From Octopus bimaculoides (taxonomy: Eukaryota), in contig NC_069003.1 in the NCBI RefSeq assembly GCF_001194135.2, positions 21,991,317 to 22,037,202 of the forward strand: a stretch of DNA of 45,886 bases, in the 5' to 3' direction. Numbering within the stretch: position 1 is the stretch's first letter; every line of letters begins with the position of its first letter. Shown here piece after piece: positions 6,741-14,827 of this stretch. The notes under the pieces are model-generated. The model made no database searches. It saw only the letters and a program-made list of their open reading frames with translations, and had not been told where the DNA came from. Made by a program: the position numbers and the translations under genes.

Positions 6741-7841
6741 CAATATTTCTGTAGCCAAGCCGACTAGGTTCTTGCAGAGCTAGTCGGTTAGGCGAAATTT
6801 CCCCCATTTAGGGGCAAAATTTTCATTAGAACTTTTCAATTTTACACTTTTCACATATCTTATTTTTGAAAAAATGTTGTTGAAGAGAGCAGCGAGCTGT
6901 TCTCTTCTCTCTGCTTCACTCCCCGAAAAAAAGAACGACATGTCAAGTCGCATTTCACCCCGCCCAGCTGACGCCATAAAAGGCAAACTTTTGAATGCCG
7001 AGGAACGTTCTGCCACCTGCAGCATTCCTGATTCCAGTCTGTTTAACAGACTTTCTCATATACACTTCCCAGCTCTCACCTCCACCATTGCTCCTACACT
7101 GGAGAAGGAGGAAGAAAAAAACAACACCAAGACCACAACCAGTTGCCATTGTAACGGTTTCGCTTCCGCAGCTAAACAGAGCTCGGAAGAAACCAAAGTT
7201 ACAATGGCAGAAATAAACAATGCTAAGGAGTTGTTAAGAAAAGATGGCAATAATGTCTTTCTTAACACTCCACAAGCATTGATACAAGCAACAAACAGAA
7301 GAACAATAATATACAAGGTGTTCAACACAAGATACCACAAAATGGAGAGTGCTACTCCACAGAGGTTGGAGATAGCTCTAAAACCCATATGGGGCCAGAA
7401 AAGTTTTGTAAACAAAGGGAAGCGCTTTGGAACAGTGGAAGTGCGCTTCCCAACGGAAGAGGATGCCATCCGGCACTCCACAACACCATTGAAGGCGGAC
7501 GATCTATTACTCGTGCCGACATTGAAGAGACTGCCGCTATTCTAGAAGTGCATAGAATGAAAGAGAAAAACTTGTCGGGTATGGGAATGCAGCTCCTTGT
7601 TCAAATTGAACAAAATAGCAGAAATGCCATACCTGACGCAATAAACTTGCCGGATGGCAGTAGGATACACTTTGCTGTAGAGGGCCGCAGACCAAAAGCC
7701 TCCACACCACCATCTCCACCCATCACCAAACCAACACCAAGAACCTCCCACCAAAGAAGAAAATAACAGAGCCAGCAACAACAACAACAGAAATTGCAAA
7801 AGAATTTTCGCCAGACCCTACGGACATTCCCTTCCCAGATC
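6741..7841 (+). mobile_element. Tx1/L1-clade LINE copy 1, 5' UTR and ORF1 (internally deleted), left of the EVE
   Basis: ORF1-like translation (6874-7545) homologous to copies 2 and 3. 5' UTR hairpin gccgactag...ctagtcggt. Deletions at about 7522 and 7696, the second removing the zinc knuckle. Confidence 0.8.
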
Positions 7842-7974
7842 CTACTAAATTTAATTTAATTACAAGAGAGGAGGAGTCCGGACTCCTCAGAGACAGCGAT
7901 GCCGCTGGAGGAAGAGGTGCCCCCTCTAGTTTATACGTTTCTGCAGCGCTTGTGTGTATAGAAAATAAATTGTA

Positions 7975-8036
7975 TGACGTCATCTATCACGTGATATACA
8001 GCATATAACAGGAAGTATACGAGCAGCAGCTCAGTT
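7975..8036 (+). promoter_or_regulatory. Predicted Pol II promoter for VP
   Basis: TGACGTCA (CRE) 7975-7982, CACGTG (E-box) 7988-7993, TATAA 8004-8008, CAGGAAGT (ETS-like) 8009-8016, and TCAGTT initiator 8031-8036 whose A lies 29 nt from the TATA start. Confidence 0.65.
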
Positions 8037-8042
8037 CCTGTT

Positions 8043-9287
8043 ATGCCGCCGAGGAAGAAAGATCGTGAAGCAGACAAAACTATAGAATTTCACGTACCGG
8101 GATATAAATTCTTAGGACCTGGAACTGATCTGAAATACAGACGACATCAGAAACCAGTAAACAAATTAGATGCCATAGCAAAAACACATGACCTCGCTTA
8201 CGAAAATCCTAATAAGGACACCTGGGAATCAGACAAGGAATTCATCAGAAACGCTGTTAAAGAAGGACCCACTGGCATCCTCACAGCTGGAGCTATATCT
8301 CTTAAACATTATAGCGGACTTGATAAGAAGTTCAGAGGCGCCAACAGCAATTCTAATAGCGTTACTCATAGCGATTACGATCTTAAAAATATGGCTGAGG
8401 AATCGACAAGCAACGAAGGCGCAACAGCAGCATCAGCAGGATGGGCTGGAAGTCAAGTTCAAACGGCATCAATCCCTGAAGCCACTGGAAACTTCAGTGG
8501 AGACGTCTGCTTCAAAAGAAGATTCAGACACGGAGTTAAAACAACTCAAATGAACAACGCTAAAGTCAAGTTCACGAAATTTCAGGGCAACGAAGCTGGC
8601 TACCACAACGTGGGACACAGCGCATACGGAGAGGTTACTTCGGAGGACTACATCATCCCTTACTGGTTGACATCATGGGTAAACCCGATACAATTCGAAC
8701 AAACTATGAAAACGGCTACATCCTACAGGATAAAGTCCGTAGGTTTCGAAATATCCAACGTCATGGGTGGCGAATGGACATCTAGAAACAACGAAGAAGT
8801 ATTCTTATACACAGAAGTATCAGACATCAATTACGATCACCAACAACCTATCAAAAAAAAAGACGGAACACATTCTATCAGCAGCGGAAACATGGTAACA
8901 GCCAACAGAACACTGATAAACAAAGTGCTTTACACTTCAGAAGACCCGCCCCAACTCGTTTACATCAACGTACCAGCAGCATGCAGACCCAATGGGACGG
9001 CAGCTCAACTCTACTTCACCTTCGACATAACATACTTCCTGGAGGTGGAATGCTACTTCGAAGCTATGCACCACCCACAAAAAGTAGCAACCATATGCCC
9101 TGAAGTAGCACGACAGTCCACGTACAAAAACTTCAACTACGACCTCTTCTTAGTCACGCCCCCTGGAAGGCACTTGAATCATATCACACCCAAAGGGAAA
9201 AGGCACGGCAGAACAACATTCATCGACGAGGACTCGGCCGGAAACAAAGTACTTCAACATCTGTCAGGCCACTTCGTTAATCGCTAA
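8043..9287 (+). CDS. Parvovirus-like capsid VP1 (414 aa) with N-terminal PLA2 domain; probable VP2 start at Met117 (8391)
   Basis: Ca-binding loop VPGYKFLGPG, catalytic KLDAIAKTHDLAY and downstream SDKEF Asp. Basic N-terminus PPRKK. Ala/Gly/Ser-rich stretch after a strong-context ATG (aaaaatATGg). IPYWLTSWVNPIQFEQTMKTATSYRIKSVGFEISNV resembles the conserved parvoviral capsid core. No stops. Confidence 0.88.
   Translation: MPPRKKDREADKTIEFHVPGYKFLGPGTDLKYRRHQKPVNKLDAIAKTHDLAYENPNKDTWESDKEFIRNAVKEGPTGILTAGAISLKHYSGLDKKFRGANSNSNSVTHSDYDLKNMAEESTSNEGATAASAGWAGSQVQTASIPEATGNFSGDVCFKRRFRHGVKTTQMNNAKVKFTKFQGNEAGYHNVGHSAYGEVTSEDYIIPYWLTSWVNPIQFEQTMKTATSYRIKSVGFEISNVMGGEWTSRNNEEVFLYTEVSDINYDHQQPIKKKDGTHSISSGNMVTANRTLINKVLYTSEDPPQLVYINVPAACRPNGTAAQLYFTFDITYFLEVECYFEAMHHPQKVATICPEVARQSTYKNFNYDLFLVTPPGRHLNHITPKGKRHGRTTFIDEDSAGNKVLQHLSGHFVNR
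8188..8553 (+). CDS. Overprinted +1-frame ORF (121 aa) with one predicted transmembrane helix, X/ARF1/MAAP/SAT-like
   Basis: Stop-free for 121 codons in the +1 frame over the PLA2 C-terminal half and the VP1u/VP2 boundary. Hydrophobic APTAILIALLIAITILKIWL followed by basic RNR and a polar tail. Confidence 0.5.
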   Translation: MTSLTKILIRTPGNQTRNSSETLLKKDPLASSQLELYLLNIIADLIRSSEAPTAILIALLIAITILKIWLRNRQATKAQQQHQQDGLEVKFKRHQSLKPLETSVETSASKEDSDTELKQLK

Positions 9288-9314
9288 TACCAGCGACAGC
9301 GTTTACTAAACACT

Positions 9315-9360
9315 GGGCGGGAAAAAACTATATATATACAACTACGAAAACACGATCACA
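9315..9360 (+). promoter_or_regulatory. Predicted Pol II promoter for NS
   Basis: GGGCGG GC box 9315-9320, TATATATATA 9329-9338, and TCA initiator-like at 9356-9358 (29 nt from the TATA start); ATG at 9378. Confidence 0.6.
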
Positions 9361-9377
9361 CCACACAGCCGCCAGCG

Positions 9378-10181
9378 ATGGAGCCTTCAACATCCAACAC
9401 CGTGTACGCTACTAAAGAATCATTCGACGCCTTCATCAAAAATTCGAATTTGCTGCCGTATACTTGGGTATACAGATGGAATGAGGATAATGAATTCACG
9501 TGGGACGAATCTCCTACAATCGGCAAGGCGCTCGAGACGATAAGATACACACAGTCACCACAAGCGCAATACTTTATGAACATAATATCAAGACACCCTT
9601 CCATTGTAATTTACCACAAAGAGGCGCAAAGTAAGATTAAACACTGCTACGACAGAAAACATTTTCACGTCATTTCGTTCCACAAGGAACATCCGTCCAA
9701 CCAACACAGCTTTCAAATGCTAAAAAACATACTAAAGAACAATATAGCGAGACCATACACAATGGCCGCCATGAAAGTGTTCACACCGTACGGCTTCTGC
9801 AAATACCTCACACAGGACGATTCCTTAAGATGGGTTGTCTGTGCAAACAACATCAACTCCGAACAGACAGCTCTACTGAAAAAACTAACTGATAAAGAAT
9901 ATCACGAAAGCGATAATGATTTATCGGACACCGAATCGGTTAACAAAACAAAGACTGTCAGAGGTGACAAGTACGACTTTATTAAAAAGATGATGCGCCA
10001 ATGCAACAGCACAGACTTGGGAGACATCATCCAGTACTGCAACAACTCACCAAAAATATCTCACAAAACGACATGGCAGAATATATACAGAAATACAGCA
10101 AATATACAAACCATAATATCAGCAGCAGCTACTGAAACAAATATAGAAACGCTGAGCACTTACATTCCCTTCCACGGATAG
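9378..10181 (+). CDS. NS1/Rep-like protein, N-terminal HUH endonuclease domain; truncated before the SF3 helicase, last codons LINE-derived
   Basis: IVIYH...KHFHVISFH (HUH, H95/H97) and FCKYLTQ (candidate catalytic Tyr143). Good start context gccagcgATGg. No Walker A motif. The ORF runs into Tx1 sequence at 10162 and stops at TAG 10179-10181. Confidence 0.75.
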   Translation: MEPSTSNTVYATKESFDAFIKNSNLLPYTWVYRWNEDNEFTWDESPTIGKALETIRYTQSPQAQYFMNIISRHPSIVIYHKEAQSKIKHCYDRKHFHVISFHKEHPSNQHSFQMLKNILKNNIARPYTMAAMKVFTPYGFCKYLTQDDSLRWVVCANNINSEQTALLKKLTDKEYHESDNDLSDTESVNKTKTVRGDKYDFIKKMMRQCNSTDLGDIIQYCNNSPKISHKTTWQNIYRNTANIQTIISAAATETNIETLSTYIPFHG

Positions 10182-10484
10182 TGAGAAAGGGGAGTGGCAC
10201 ACTGTACCACCAAAGAAAAAAACGGAGAAGGAAGACAAAAGAAACAAGTGACAAAGAGGGGAGGCGTGAAAAAGGTGAGCTTCCCAACATCATCAACAAC
10301 ACCTTCTCCACCGCAAACACCAAAAATGAACATCTATTAAACTTTTTAGAAAACAGTACAAATACAAATACCACAAACTTCATTATACCCTTATACAACG
10401 CACCCCCAGCACACATACTCACACTATAGATAACCGAAGAAAACTACAATAAAATAAAAGAAAAGTTTCCGAATGATGTTGGCT
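10162..10484 (+). mobile_element. Tx1 copy 1 ORF1 C-terminal part, right of the EVE
   Basis: Matches 14338-14642 (DSEKGEWHTVPPKKKRRRK...KIKEKFPNDVG), then breaks off into the 5' UTR of copy 2. Confidence 0.85.
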
Positions 10485-13190
10485 TTGAACATTTCTATTT
10501 TCACATTTTAGCGCATAATATTTTTGCAAAATGTCGTTGAAGAGAGCATCGAACTGTTCTCTTCTCCCTGCTTCACTCCCCGACAAAAAGAACGATGTGT
10601 CAAGTCACTTTCTCATATACACTTCCTAGCTCTCACCTCCACCATTGCTCCTACACTGGAGAAGGAGGAAGAAACAAAATAACACCAAGACCACAACCAG
10701 TTGCCATTGAAATGGTTTCGCTTCCGCAGCTAAACAGAGCTCGGAAGAAATCAAAGTTACAATGGCAGAAATAAACAATGCTAAGGAGTTGTTAAGAAAA
10801 GATGGCAATAATGTCTTTCTTAACACTCCACAAGCATTGATACAAGCAACGAACAGAAGAACAATAATATACAAGGTGTTCAACACAAGATACCACAAGA
10901 TGGAGAGTGCTACCCTACAGAGATTGGAGATAGCTCTAAAGCCCATATAGGGCCAGAAAAGTTTTGTAACTAAAGGGAAGTGCTTTGGAACAGTGGAAGT
11001 GCACTTCCCAACAGAAGAGGATGCCATCCGGCACTCCACAACACCACTGAAGGTGGCGATCTATTACTCGTGCCGACATACCTTGGTCGGCGCATGACAA
11101 AAATAAAACTAGATCAAGTGCCGCCAGAACTGAACATCTCCTGGCTAGTGGCAGCTGTGCTCTTTGACATTGAAGAGACTGCCACTATTNNNNNNNNNNN
11201 NNNNNNNNNNNNNNNNNNNNNNNNNNNNNNNNNNNNNNNNNNNNNNNNNNNNNNNNNNNNNNNNNNNNNNNNNNNNNNNNNNNNNNNNNNNNNNNNNNNN
11301 NNNNNNNNNNNNNNNNNNNNNNNNNNNNNNNNNNNNNNNNNNNNNNNNNNNNNNNNNNNNNNNNNNNNNNNNNNNNNNNNNNNNNNNNNNNNNNNNNNNN
11401 NNNNNNNNNNNNNNNNNNNNNNNNNNNNNNNNNNNNNNNNNNNNNNNNNNNNNNNNNNNNNNNNNNNNNNNNNNNNNNNNNNNNNNNNNNNNNNNNNNNN
11501 NNNNNNNNNNNNNNNNNNNNNNNNNNNNNNNNNNNNNNNNNNNNNNNNNNNNNNNNNNNNNNNNNNNNNNNNNNNNNNNNNNNNNNNNNNNNNNNNNNNN
11601 NNNNNNNNNNNNNNNNNNNNNNNNNNNNNNNNNNNNNNNNNNNNNNNNNNNNNNNNNNNNNNNNNNNNNNNNNNNNNNNNNNNNNNNNNNNNNNNNNNNN
11701 NNNNNNNNNNNNNNNNNNNNNNNNNNNNNNNNNNNNNNNNNNNNNNNNNNNNNNNNNNNNNNNNNNNNNNNNNNNAACATCTATTAAACTTTTTAGAAAA
11801 CAGTACAAATACAAATATCTCAAACTTCATTATACCCTTATACAACGCACCCCCAGCACACATACTCACACTAAAAATAACCGAAGAAAACTACAATAAA
11901 ATAAAAGAAAAGTTTCCGAAAGATGTTGGATCGCTACGGAGAAGTTTCTCCCAAAGCCTTTATCAGAATTTAGTGGAAACACCCACACGGAAACATAGGG
12001 GAGCCACCCCACCAGAAAACAATAAGTAGAGCTTTTTCTCCTCTAATACTTTCCTATTTTTTAAAAAGAAACATGGTAATTCTCAGACTCGGAAGTATAA
12101 ACGTGAGAGGCCTCGGGTCGCCTTGGAAGCAAGGTCACCTGTTGAACGACCTGGTCTTACAGTATAGATGTAGTAGCCATTAGCGAAACCAGGCTCTCTG
12201 ACCCGCAGGAACTCGCAGCCCTTTTCGGTGGATACGAGATTTTTCTATCTCTGTGTCGGCCGGGAGCGGGCGGTGGGGGTACTGTGGTGCTATTTCGGAA
12301 AGGCCTGGATTTGAAAATAAAGGCAGTCTTCCTGGATCCAGAAGATAAGTTGGTGGTCCTGGATGTTGATAGTAGTGACGGCGCTGCCTACGCTCCGACA
12401 GGAGCAGGGCAGTCGGATTATTTCAAACGTCTGGAGGTTTTCCTGGGTACTTCTCGCACTTTAGTGCTAGTTGGGGATTGGAACGCTGTCTNNNNNNNNN
12501 NACGTCTGGAGGTTTTCCTGGGTACTTCTCGCACTTTAGTGCTAGTTGGGGATTGGAACGCTGTCTTAGACGAACGTATCGATAGGGTGGGTGCGGGAGC
12601 ATCTGATAGGAGAGTGGGGTGCAAGAGCCTCGCCAACCTGCTCAAACGCTTTCAGCTGTCCGACAGGTATCGACTAGACAACCCGAATGTGCCAATGTGG
12701 ACTTGGACTAATCGCATTGGGTCGTCTAGATTGTACTTAGATAGAGTTTTCTGTAGGCCAGCAGATAAGGATAGCATAGGGTGTCCACAATTCAACTACA
12801 CAGACCACAAATTCGTGATCTGTACGGTCGACTTAGATAGGCTCCATAGACAAGGTCCCGGTTACTGGAAGCTAAACATGTCGTTAACGGAGTGCAAAGC
12901 CTACAGAGACCGGATTAGTTTATTAGTTAAGAGGGCATTAACCGGGGTAATCATCAATAACAACTGGTGGTTCACCCTCAAGCGGGCAATTAGAGCAGAA
13001 TCGATTAGGTGTAGTAAGGCTTTAGCTGTAGAACGTAAGAAAACAGAGTGGGATTTAGTTAACAAACTAGACGAGGCTCTTAGGACAGGCATCAGAACCG
13101 ATGTGCTGGCAGCCAGGTTGGCCCTTGACCAACACTTTGACGCCAAACACGAAGGCTGCATTGTCAGAGCTAAGGCATGTTCGGTAAGCA
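10485..13190 (+). mobile_element. Tx1/L1-clade LINE copy 2: ORF1 (gap inside) and ORF2 APE endonuclease, truncated before RT
   Basis: ORF1 stop at 12027-12029. ORF2 ATG at 12073 (MVILRLGSINVRGL). APE motifs ETR, AAYAP, VGDWNAVLD, WTW, YLDRVF, TDHKFV, then GPGYWKLN typical of L1/Tx1 ORF2. No RT motifs follow. Confidence 0.85.
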
Positions 13191-13227
13191 GCTCGTCTCT
13201 TTAACAGAGCTGCAATCCTGGATCAAA

Positions 13228-13410: not shown

Positions 13411-14827
13411 TGTTTTAATTTTTTATATATTTGTGTAGTCAAGCCAACTAGGTTCTGGAGCTAGTCGGTTAGGCGAAATTTTCGTTTGAACATTTCCATC
13501 TTCACATTTTAGCGCATAATATTTTTGCAAAATGTCGTTGAAGAGAGCAGCGAGCTGTTCTCTTCTCTCTGCTTCACTCCCCGACAAAAAGAACGACATG
13601 TCAAGTCGCATTTCACCCCGCCCAGCTAACACCATAAAAGGCAAAGTTTTGAATGCCGAGGAACGTTCTGCCACGTGCAGTGTTCCTGATTCCAGTCTGT
13701 TTAACAGACTTTCTCATATACACTTCCCAGCTCTCACCTCCACCATTTTCCTACACCGGAGAAGGAGGAAGAAAAAAACAATAATATACAAGGTGTTCAA
13801 CACAAGATACCACAAGATGGTTGGAGATAGCTCTAAAGCCCATATAGGGCCAGAAAAGTTTTGTAACTAAAGGGAAGCGCTTTGGAACAGTGGAAGTGCA
13901 CTNNNNNNNNNNAATAAAACTAGATCAAGTGCCGCCAGAACTGAACATCTCCTGGCTAGTGGCAGCTGTGCTCTTTGACATTGAAGAGACTGCCACTATT
14001 CTGGAGGTGCATAGAATGAAAGAGAAAAACTGGTCGGGTATGGGAATGCATCTCCTTGTTCAAACTGAACAAGATAGCATGCCATACCTGACGCAATAAA
14101 CTTGCCGGATGGCAGTAGGATACACGTTGCTGTAGAGGGCCGCAGACCAAAGTGCTACCTCTGCAGCAGCGAACAACACCTAAAGAAACACTGCCCCATC
14201 TACAAGCAAAGATTGGAGGCACACAAAAGAAGAAAATTCCTGCTGCAACAACAACAACAGCCAAAAGCATCCACACCACCATCTCCACCCATCACCAAAC
14301 CAACAACAGCAACAGAATTTTCGCCAGACCATACAGACATTCCCTTCCCAGATCAGCTCGGATTGTGCGAGCATGGATAGTGAGAAAGGGGAGTGGCACA
14401 CTGTACCACCAAAGAAAAAACGGAGAAGGAAGACAAAAGAAACAAGTGACAAAGAGGGGAGGCGCAAAAAAGGTGAGCTTCCCAACATCATCAACAACAC
14501 CTTCTCCACCGCAAACACCAAATACAAATATCTCAAATTTCATTATACCCTTATGCAACGCACCCCCAGCACACATACTCACACTAAAAATAACCGAAGA
14601 AAACTACAATAAAATAAAAGAAAAGTTTCCGAATGATGTTGGATCGCTACGGAGAAGTTTCTCCCAAAGCCTTTATCAGAATTTAGTGGAAACACCCACA
14701 CGGAAACATAGGGGAGCCACCCCACCAGAAAACAGTAAGTAGAGCTTTTTCTCCTCTAATACTTTCCTATTTTTTAAAAAGAAACATGGTAATTCTCAGA
14801 CTCGGAAGTATAAATGTGAGAGGCCTC
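13411..14827 (+). mobile_element. Tx1 copy 3: 5' UTR, ORF1 with CCHC zinc knuckle, first codons of ORF2 only
   Basis: CYLCSSEQHLKKHC (C-X2-C-X4-H-X4-C) at 14153-14194. ORF2 ATG at 14786; homology ends at gagaggcctc (14827). Confidence 0.85.

Follow-up and report, generated by a model that had tools for sequence, protein, structure and literature searches.

Does a capsid gene (VP) that precedes the replication gene (NS) on the same strand of an endogenous parvovirus record the native order of a viral genome, or the damage done when that genome entered its host? To our knowledge, the described single-strand-sense parvoviruses all have the replication gene first. The question is raised by a stretch of 45,886 nucleotides of the Octopus bimaculoides genome (contig NC_069003.1, positions 21,991,317 to 22,037,202; hereafter the window, whose own numbering we use). 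Both genes are open reading frames there, and the coordinates of the original prediction were confirmed: VP ends with a TAA at 9285-9287, NS starts with an ATG at 9378 on the same strand, and 90 nt lie between them. That prediction offered two explanations, namely that a circularised genome had opened inside NS upon integration, or that the virus came from a lineage with a native VP-NS order, possibly one with a circular single-stranded DNA genome. We conclude, at a probability of roughly 75%, that the window holds an element derived from a cephalopod-associated parvovirus lineage in whose native, monosense genome the capsid gene comes first. The parts of the locus are as follows.

6827..7841, + strand: left part of copy 1 of a host repeat, R, interrupted by the viral insert (direct-repeat families)
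7824..7835, + strand: left copy of a 12-nt target duplication, ACATTCCCTTCC (exact 12-mer)
7842..10166, + strand: endogenous parvoviral element, whole insert, made of the left non-coding region, VP, the spacer and the 5' half of NS
7842..8042, + strand: left non-coding region of the viral genome, homologous to the pre-VP region of L013 and L006
8043..9287, + strand: VP (capsid) gene with N-terminal PLA2 domain, an ORF of 414 codons (Pfam PF08398)
9288..9377, + strand: VP-NS spacer of 90 nt, the predicted NS core promoter
9378..10181, + strand: 5' part of the NS gene, ATG at 9378, 267 open codons
10162..10173, + strand: right copy of the target duplication (exact 12-mer)
10174..10482, + strand: right part of R copy 1 (repeat families D3, D10 and D19)
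14309..14420, + strand: empty-site paralog in R copy 3, target uninterrupted (repeat families, blastn)

Repeat R bounds the insert on both sides. Its copy 1 is split at 7841 and ~10173, and the same sequence is contiguous in copy 3 (14354 to 14372), an uninterrupted paralog 6.5 kb from the insert. On the left, 6827-7841 matches 10484-11189 and 13485-14354 with 73-99% identity (direct-repeat families), and its last nucleotides, 7796-7841, equal 14309-14354 (blastn); on the right, 10173-10335 corresponds to 14372-14533 with 95% identity (blastn), and the next copy of R begins at 10484. The exact 12-mer that flanks the insert is also present once in the empty paralog (14337-14348), of which ~24 nt (within 14349-14372) are missing at the filled site. 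The first 5 nt of the right duplication double as the last viral codons, i.e., they form a microhomology. The surroundings of the viral copy in the window are repeat-rich, repeats of the window also occur in O. vulgaris, and an ORF near the insert (12284-13204) encodes a LINE-type endonuclease domain (Exo_endo_phos). No meaningful Pfam match was found for the left part of R (6827-7841).

The sequence from 7842 to ~10166 is an endogenous parvoviral element (EPV), a dead virus copy inside this host repeat: host DNA is contiguous with viral sequence on both flanks, as an EPV requires, 7842-10181 contains no N gaps, and the insert is single-copy within the window (blastn against the window). Its right limit was set by the protein alignment of NS, in which homology stops at '...STYI'. 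We propose that 2.3 kb from the left end of a parvovirus genome would have been copied as DNA into a break in the repeat, the capture taking place at the DNA level, probably via end-joining with microhomology. The copy is incomplete compared with a viral genome, having an internal deletion in VP, a truncated NS and no right end. The lesions are few. VP carries a single in-frame internal deletion of ~185 codons of the capsid core, without stops or frameshifts, and shares 41-42% identity with P0001, a relative of 611 aa, over two stop-free blocks of the same frame (tblastn E 2e-58 and 2e-35). NS carries a single truncation at the right boundary of the insert, its last 4 codons and stop being supplied by R; it ends at this boundary and is therefore without the whole SF3 helicase, and the missing part, which includes the C-terminus, amounts to ~300 codons. 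Such a copy presumably cannot replicate, and could express at most a shortened capsid protein and an NS fragment restricted to the nuclease domain.

What remains of NS covers the HUH nuclease/origin-binding domain, with H95, H97 and Y143; at the level of the motif (H-x-H plus Tyr), these residues are invariant in 8 aligned sequences. The window ORF has no Pfam match of its own, and the nuclease domain yielded neither a fold nor a PDB match by sequence. Its assignment comes from relatives: it is 41-46% identical to the full-length NS1 of L001 and L014 (tblastn E ~1e-62 to 1e-65), and in the alignment the relatives' NS extends past the window truncation into a Walker A motif, GVSNSGKS, which belongs to the helicase domain that the window copy lacks. 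Full-length relatives match PF01057 (E 2e-11 for the NS of L001, 4e-16 for P0010) and the helicase of AAV Rep40/68 (E 1e-8 with P0010 alone, 1e-12 with an NS profile). Judged by these matches, the NS1 of the relatives is of the parvovirus type with an SF3 helicase.

VP matches the parvovirus PLA2 domain (PF08398, E 1.3e-10), and by sequence this part of the upstream ORF is the only one with a Pfam match. A search for sequences identical to the VP of the window found none. The capsid core matched nothing in Pfam (16 family members searched) or in the PDB (with a single sequence or a profile), and sequence-level matches outside the lineage were found neither for the core nor for the NS nuclease domain. 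The capsid fold was therefore assessed on an AlphaFold2 model of the full-length relative P0001, built from a curated alignment of 45 sequences; a 95-sequence MAFFT alignment of VP fragments was misaligned and not used, and an earlier model from 16 sequences was discarded (pLDDT 38.8). The quality of the retained model is moderate, with a mean pLDDT of 52 (70-89 in the core blocks) and TM scores of 0.3-0.4 against its matches. The best 50 of its 184 significant PDB matches are all parvovirus capsids (E 1.6e-9 to 8e-8, probability 1.00), with whose cores it aligns over ~450-520 columns; the PDB capsid chains are without the PLA2 region. In the BFVD, Parvoviridae capsid or structural proteins make up the ten best matches and nearly all of the best 50. 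The full-length relative of the window VP is thus predicted to have the parvovirus jelly-roll capsid fold.

If the order of the genes had arisen in the octopus, the trace of the event should be sought between them. The prediction that neither a palindrome nor AATAAA lies there proved correct: AATAAA and ATTAAA are both absent from 9288-9377, and the spacer, folded as single-stranded DNA, forms no hairpin (z -0.59). With 50 of 200 shuffles equally stable, the spacer does not exceed shuffled sequence in stability and therefore contains no telomere-like palindrome. The spacer is not featureless, which corrects the earlier picture of it. It has a TATA element at 9329-9339 and an initiator-like TCACA at 9356, the positions of which are conserved in relatives, with the TATA box 45-53 nt 5' of the NS ATG in the window, L001, L007 and L015. 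The length of the spacer varies between 75 and 95 nt in the window, L001, L007 and L014, and a TATA-bearing spacer of 75-130 nt is found in the VP-NS relatives, the O. vulgaris copy excepted. Together with the 3' end of VP and with NS, it forms one collinear block with L013 (73% over 1.3 kb), L015 and L004. By these alignments, the spacer is homologous across the lineage and is not a rearrangement junction; a local breakpoint within 9287-9378, which would have spoken for damage, was not found, because the interval consists of conserved sequence of the predicted promoter. From the positions of the motifs, the spacer would act as a TATA/initiator promoter of NS, and with two such modules VP and NS would each be transcribed from a promoter of its own. 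The VP message probably continues across the spacer, in which a poly(A) signal is absent. We also considered whether the A15 end of L014, which is preceded by ATTAAA, could be the poly(A) tail of a VP-NS read-through transcript, and rejected it: L018, 98.6% identical to L014, continues past the same A-run, which is genomic.

The gene order recurs outside the window. VP precedes NS on the same strand in L001-3, L007-11, L013, L014, L015, L016, L017, L018 and L006, the last being O. vulgaris chromosome OX597831.1. These relatives represent at least seven diverged loci from at least four run series, all from host-derived data (Logan contigs, those of L001-3 from runs ERR12921338-41, and the one octopus chromosome), and the proteins of the copies have diverged by 40-60%. 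Some have intact genes: L001 encodes an intact VP of 611 aa, followed after a 95-nt gap by an NS that is open over at least 565 aa, and other full-length open relatives include P0019 (608 aa) and P0010 (568 aa). The arrangement in L018 is complex: a partial NS follows VP and precedes another NS, which is full and divergent. The canonical arrangements (NS before VP on one strand, or ambisense) were seen neither in the window nor in these relatives. In L014/L018, L015, L016 and L017, there is no VP within 200-630 nt downstream of NS and no ORF downstream of NS, and in the window, L006 and L018 the sequence that precedes VP contains no NS. The VP-first layout is a trait of the lineage and not local damage, because at least seven related copies share it; the order and the short hairpin-free spacer recur across the lineage, and would therefore have been inherited from the virus rather than made at the window locus.

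The host/virus boundary in the window lies 201 nt 5' of the VP ATG, and the region between them contains the following elements.

7871-7888: perfect palindrome of 18 nt
7913-7931: conserved motif
7975-7982: TGACGTCA
7988-7993: CACGTG
~38 nt 5' of the VP ATG: TATA-like ATATAA
8031: TCAGT

The original prediction had asked whether 7844-7961 aligns with the C-terminus of full-length NS. Comparison of 7842-8042 with NS gave only noise (E at least 0.04), and the region aligns instead with the non-coding sequence upstream of VP in L013 and in the O. vulgaris copy, L006. Folded as single-stranded DNA, it has a z of -2.74, and its counterpart in L006 one of -4.84. The contigs L001-3 and L013 start, and homology to L006 and L018 sets in, ~170-230 nt 5' of VP; the coincidence of the left ends of several copies fits a discrete left end of the genome. 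An 11-mer core of the conserved motif recurs in L006 on the + strand and, inverted, 3' of NS in L017. There, the left motif (AGAGGTGCCCC..TCTAGTT) is found reverse-complemented ~400 nt past the NS stop (z 4.2; 0 of 200 shuffles), adjoining an inverted repeat with 36-nt arms (fold z -3.9). The evidence for inverted terminal repeats thus consists of one ~20-nt motif at one locus; direct similarity between post-NS and pre-VP regions was not found, nor, among the relatives, a free viral genome with both termini. We infer that the source genome was probably linear with terminal, and probably inverted, repeats, and L001, L017 and L018 suggest a length of ~4.5 kb for the viral unit.

The order of the genes might instead be the trait of an endogenous family, if a rearranged genome (e.g., one with a telomere-less concatemer junction) had integrated once, long ago, and had then been multiplied in cephalopod genomes by duplication or mobile elements. 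We regard this as unlikely. It would agree with the provenance of the copies, which all come from host-derived assemblies and are for the most part short broken fragments (133 VP-family matches), with the lack of free viral relatives in IMG/VR and the JGI metagenomes, and with the position of the window copy in a repeat-rich region beside an ORF for a LINE-type endonuclease. However, full-length open genes (L001, P0019, P0010) persist despite the 40-60% protein divergence, over which neutral decay would have destroyed the frames; the flanks differ among loci, being R in the window and unrelated sequence at L006 and L018; the shared left limit fits the capture of a genome terminus each time; and the TATA/initiator modules are conserved. 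Head-to-tail concatemers and circular episomes of the AAV type also place the end of VP before the start of NS/Rep on the same strand, with an ITR of at least 100 nt at the junction. A concatemer of this kind has no support as the source of the window copy: unlike such a junction, the spacer measures 90 nt, is hairpin-free and without ITR sequence, resembles a promoter, and is conserved over copies that have diverged by 40-60%, and the reciprocal NS-VP junction was seen in 0 of 4 loci.

That a circular or permuted source opened inside NS, so that an NS-VP genome now reads NS-C, VP, NS-N, is highly improbable in our judgement. It would account for an NS cut short where the insert ends on the right and for the 201 nt of other sequence ahead of VP, and circular parvoviral DNA forms have been reported from shrimp (PMC8507497). 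Yet the ~300 NS codons are gone altogether and not relocated, since 7842-8042 resembles no NS C-terminus and is homologous to the relatives' pre-VP region; complete NS genes follow VP in the intact relatives, and VP-like sequence follows NS in 0 of 4 loci. Coincident left ends would not be expected from a randomly opened circle, and the terminal redundancy that the prediction had pointed to was found in none of L001, L002 and L018. Its second explanation fared better: a native VP-NS lineage agrees with the order in at least seven other loci, and the circular single-stranded DNA virus is not supported. The megaparvoviruses (PMC13426907), with a PLA2 ORF 5' of NS1 and a PLA2-less VP1 downstream, set a precedent for yet another explanation, in which the upstream ORF encodes a separate PLA2 protein and the true VP, downstream of NS, is missing here. 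The match of the PLA2 part alone in Pfam and the lack of PDB matches by sequence or profile would suit it; we hold it to be very unlikely, given that the modelled 611-aa protein matches capsid cores in the PDB (best 50, ~450-520 columns) and the BFVD, that no ORF follows NS in L014/L018, L015, L016 and L017, and that an inverted left-end motif lies ~400 nt after the NS of L017. Hardly credible, finally, is a LINE-made retrocopy or a chimera of viral mRNAs in which template switching by the reverse transcriptase placed VP before NS. The 12-nt flanking duplication has a size typical of LINE endonucleases and the insert lies in a repeat beside the Exo_endo_phos ORF (12284-13204), but poly(A) is absent at both junctions, and the insert includes a non-transcribed pre-VP region (with hairpins and TATA) as well as an intergenic promoter. 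Moreover, the same VP-spacer-NS block is found in loci without R, so local chimerism is unnecessary.

How far does a native capsid-first genome depart from known parvoviruses? Known monosense members carry NS then VP, and ambisense members carry them on opposite strands (PMC11357303, PMC13426907); the ICTV criteria are based on NS1, and gene arrangement is a shared habit and not a criterion (PMC11357303). The window lineage resembles the PLA2-bearing Parvovirinae and Densovirinae in the NS1 of the Parvo_NS1 type (PF01057) with HUH and Tyr motifs and an AAV Rep-related SF3 helicase (E 1e-8 to 1e-12), in the VP1 with N-terminal PLA2 (PF08398), glycine-rich linker and predicted capsid fold, in the estimated unit of ~4.5 kb, in the hairpin-prone non-coding ends, and in the short TATA/initiator core promoters; it differs from them in having VP then NS on one strand. 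The SwaBA-MePV-1-like megaparvoviruses of beetles (Virus Evol 2026, PMC13426907), known partly from complete EVEs, have genomes of ~6.4 kb that are likely homotelomeric with ITRs and carry four large ORFs, i.e., the PLA2 ORF, an ORF of unknown function, NS1 and VP1. They share with the cephalopod lineage a PLA2-encoding ORF 5' of NS1 on the same strand. Unlike in these viruses, where the PLA2-less VP1 stands 3' of NS1, the PLA2 ORF of the window lineage is, according to the model, the capsid protein itself, and nothing follows NS. Among animal EPVs, such as those of vertebrates (PMC9707805) and the IHHNV-derived EVEs of shrimp (PMC9357335), the window copy is ordinary in being part of a parvovirus genome that became fixed among the repeats of its host, truncated and non-replicative, sometimes with ORFs. 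It stands apart in its host and in its gene order, which has not been seen elsewhere among EPVs: in the literature searched, we found no relevant paper linking parvoviruses or densoviruses to octopus, squid or cephalopods, no description of a VP-first lineage, and no mention of the run accessions.

We conclude that the element is real and that its genome architecture is a new variant within Parvoviridae. The native genome would have comprised 1) a left non-coding region of ~200 nt with small hairpins; 2) a TATA/initiator promoter; 3) VP1, of ~610 aa, with PLA2 and a jelly-roll core; 4) a spacer of ~90 nt, itself a TATA/initiator promoter; 5) NS1, of ~570-640 aa, with HUH nuclease and SF3 helicase; and 6) a right non-coding region of ~450 nt. 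It is fairly probable that a parvovirus lineage not yet described, and ranking as a genus or higher, is present in cephalopods and may still infect them; it would be linear and capsid-first monosense, with its own TATA/initiator promoter for each gene and inverted terminal repeats. If so, this would be a third basic architecture of Parvoviridae beside the NS-VP monosense and the ambisense ones, and L001 and other intact copies would represent virus still in circulation or else very recent insertions. Models of parvovirus transcription build on the NS-first order: NS has an early promoter at the left end, the capsid promoter becomes active later on, and the 3' ends are shared. A capsid-first lineage kept over 40-60% protein divergence would mean that this order is no constraint on the family, and would provide a natural point of comparison for the means of temporal control. 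Cephalopods join the hosts with a parvovirus fossil record, and the cleanly bounded insertion, with its filled and empty paralogs, is usable for dating. More generally, endogenous elements that look rearranged should be compared with their relatives before their order is put down to integration damage.

A host repeat (R) in the window is interrupted by 2.3 kb from the left-hand part of a VP-first parvovirus genome, and this follows from the analysis of these features:

7842 to about 10166, + strand: viral element, with bounds set by the R copies and the junctions
8043-9287, + strand: VP (capsid) ORF, 414 codons, open; one in-frame internal deletion of ~185 capsid-core codons, sized relative to a 611-aa relative; no stops, no frameshifts
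9378-10181, + strand: NS (replication gene) ORF, 267 codons, open; truncated once, where the insert ends on the right; no internal stops, no frameshifts

As the original prediction had it, VP and NS follow each other on one strand, both open, across a gap of exactly 90 nt. VP carries a parvovirus PLA2 domain (Pfam PF08398, E 1.3e-10). The NS ORF has no Pfam match; it is 41-46% identical to full-length, PF01057-bearing NS1 proteins (E about 1e-62 to 1e-65) and in the alignment retains the invariant H-x-H and Tyr of the HUH nuclease. About 300 codons are missing from it, comprising the linker, the entire SF3 helicase and the C-terminus; its final four codons and stop are R sequence, and tblastn found no further parvoviral sequence elsewhere in the window. 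Because the helicase is absent, the element is unable to replicate, and the fact that both frames are open means either recent insertion or selection. NS homology ends at the nuclease/helicase boundary (~residues 270-305) in several independent copies: the window, the relatives' loci L007 and L012, and copy A of L018. Helicase-less copies may be better tolerated by the host, or the boundary region may be breakage-prone.

The insertion can be read from R itself, a ~1.3-kb host repeat present in at least three copies on this eukaryotic scaffold, which contains N gaps. Copy 3 is unbroken, 14354 continuing directly to 14372, and the same two points in copy 1 lie at 7841 and about 10173, separated by 2.3 kb that are single-copy within the window. 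The 12-mer ACATTCCCTTCC flanks the insert (7824-7835 and 10162-10173) and is found as a single copy in the empty paralog. In its right copy, the first 5 nt double as the closing viral codons; R lacks about 24 nt adjoining that copy, and neither junction has a poly(A). Such a pattern is characteristic of DNA captured at a staggered break by way of microhomology. The ORF at 12284-13204, between R copies, encodes an Exo_endo_phos domain (PF03372, E 7e-9) and is a LINE-type endonuclease fragment; R has no recognisable domain of its own and may represent the 5' portion of a LINE. Exact duplicates of 65 nt (12427-12491 / 12502-12566) and 88 nt (11102-11189 / 13913-14000) adjoin N gaps (12492-12501, 11190-11775 and 13903-13912). 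They resemble artefacts of scaffolding or gap closure within the R array, which makes the copy number and order of R untrustworthy here.

Megaparvoviruses have a PLA2 ORF separate from the capsid and upstream of NS1, with a PLA2-less VP1 downstream (PMC13426907, 2026), and for this reason the capsid identity of the upstream gene was put to the test. Sequence methods detected nothing in it beyond the PLA2 part. A curated alignment of 45 sequences gave an AlphaFold model of a VP relative with pLDDT 70-89 across the core blocks. In Foldseek the best 50 of 184 significant PDB matches were all parvovirus capsids, with alignments spanning about 450-520 columns although the PDB capsid chains are without the PLA2 region, and the best BFVD matches were nearly all parvovirus VP or structural proteins. 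On this modelled fold, the product of the upstream gene is a capsid protein of the VP1 type.

The relatives form a small protein family, with one member in Octopus vulgaris (chromosome OX597831.1; L006) and the remainder in Logan assemblies of sequencing runs. When VP and NS were located on the encoding contigs by tblastn, VP preceded NS on the same strand in L001-L003, L007-L011, L013-L018 and L006. In L001 an intact VP of 611 aa is followed, after a spacer of 95 nt, by an NS that stays open for 565 codons until the contig ends and has the HUH and Walker A motifs; P0010 is a complete 568-aa NS immediately 3' of a VP end. In nucleotide alignments, the stretch of the window from the VP 3' end through the spacer into NS is collinear with L013, L015 and L004 (73% over 1.3 kb against L013). 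The recurrence of order and strand upholds the proposal of an undescribed lineage with native VP-NS order: this order is a property of the lineage. L006 (10001-12653) is a degraded copy whose full-length VP, annotated as a 268-aa hypothetical protein, is broken by two in-frame stops; a short NS fragment follows about 600-700 nt past VP, the order being as elsewhere and the interval larger, and something may have been inserted there. It also has several interspersed repeats in common with window 23345-44132, at 70-81% identity, and these are the sole direct pointer to the host of the window: an octopod distinct from O. vulgaris. L018:1-5245 (Logan SRR8281668) carries a VP with a break, a partial NS N-terminus (about aa 10-294) and a second, full-length NS that shares just ~42% identity with the partial copy and 99% with L014; it is either two sub-lineages' elements abutting or recombined, or a chimeric contig. 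A poly(A) tail at the end of L014 was rejected, L018 showing the A-run to be genomic.

The lack of a palindrome or AATAAA between the genes was confirmed by motif check and folding (ssDNA fold z -0.59 vs shuffled), and ATTAAA is also missing from the spacer. In the spacer alignment most loci have a TATA box 45-53 nt 5' of the NS ATG, with an initiator-like element about 25 nt 3' of it. The VP ATG, too, has a comparable TATA element 34-41 nt ahead of it in L001, L018 and L006; the window has ATATAA at about -38 and TCAGT at -12 as counterparts, with TGACGTCA and CACGTG 5' of them. Because the collinear block and the TATA/initiator placement are conserved, the short hairpin-free spacer is predicted to be a conserved promoter rather than a scar. 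Between the VP stop and the NS TATA, a dyad aligns in the window (9290-9317; weak, 4 bp), L007, L013, L015 and L016, of the type GCCAG...CTGGC (GCCAT...ATGGC in L016); its sequence varies with complementarity kept, and it may serve to bind a protein. A perfect 10-nt inverted repeat (8005-8014 / 8035-8044; ATAACAGGAA / TTCCTGTTAT) flanks the predicted VP transcription start and overlaps the VP ATG; in the mRNA leader it could fold into a stem.

A circular or circularised source, opened within NS, had also been proposed. The stretch before VP (7842-8042) resembles no NS C-terminus and is homologous to the pre-VP region of L013 and L006, with which it shares a conserved motif (7913-7931); small pre-VP hairpins match in position and differ in sequence (an 18-nt perfect palindrome in the window, a 7-bp stem in L006). 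No terminal overlap occurs in the contigs, and the circle found no support. A discrete left terminus is indicated by several limits that coincide about 170-230 nt upstream of VP: the host/virus boundary of the window, the points where contigs L001-L003 and L013 begin, and those where homology sets in for L006 and L018. No VP sequence follows NS within 200-630 nt at four loci. Downstream of NS, L017 has an inverted repeat with 36-nt arms (fold z -3.9), beyond which the left-end motif recurs as its reverse complement (19/20 nt; 0/200 shuffles match the score). Together, the coinciding left limits, the absence of VP after NS, the inverted L017 motif and the lack of overlap favour a linear genome, VP then NS, with inverted terminal sequences, the right-end evidence being thin.

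In the source genome, two transcription units would have stood in tandem, both with their own TATA/initiator promoter and very short leader, and the VP message would probably read through the spacer, which in the window copy has no poly(A) signal. Integration would have proceeded by end-joining of a linear double-stranded form, already truncated or broken. All evidence for the lineage comes from host-derived assemblies, as it would if a single ancient rearranged integration had been multiplied later; this is nevertheless unlikely, because genes are intact despite 40-60% divergence among copies, the flanks differ between copies and the ends of the copies coincide.

NS1 and VP1 place the lineage in Parvoviridae; the window locus is in kind an ordinary endogenous parvoviral element (EPV). 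IMG/VR and the JGI metagenomes yielded no relatives, and in the literature searched no paper connects cephalopods with parvoviruses or EPVs. It is the monosense VP-NS order that sets the lineage apart from every described Parvoviridae member found.
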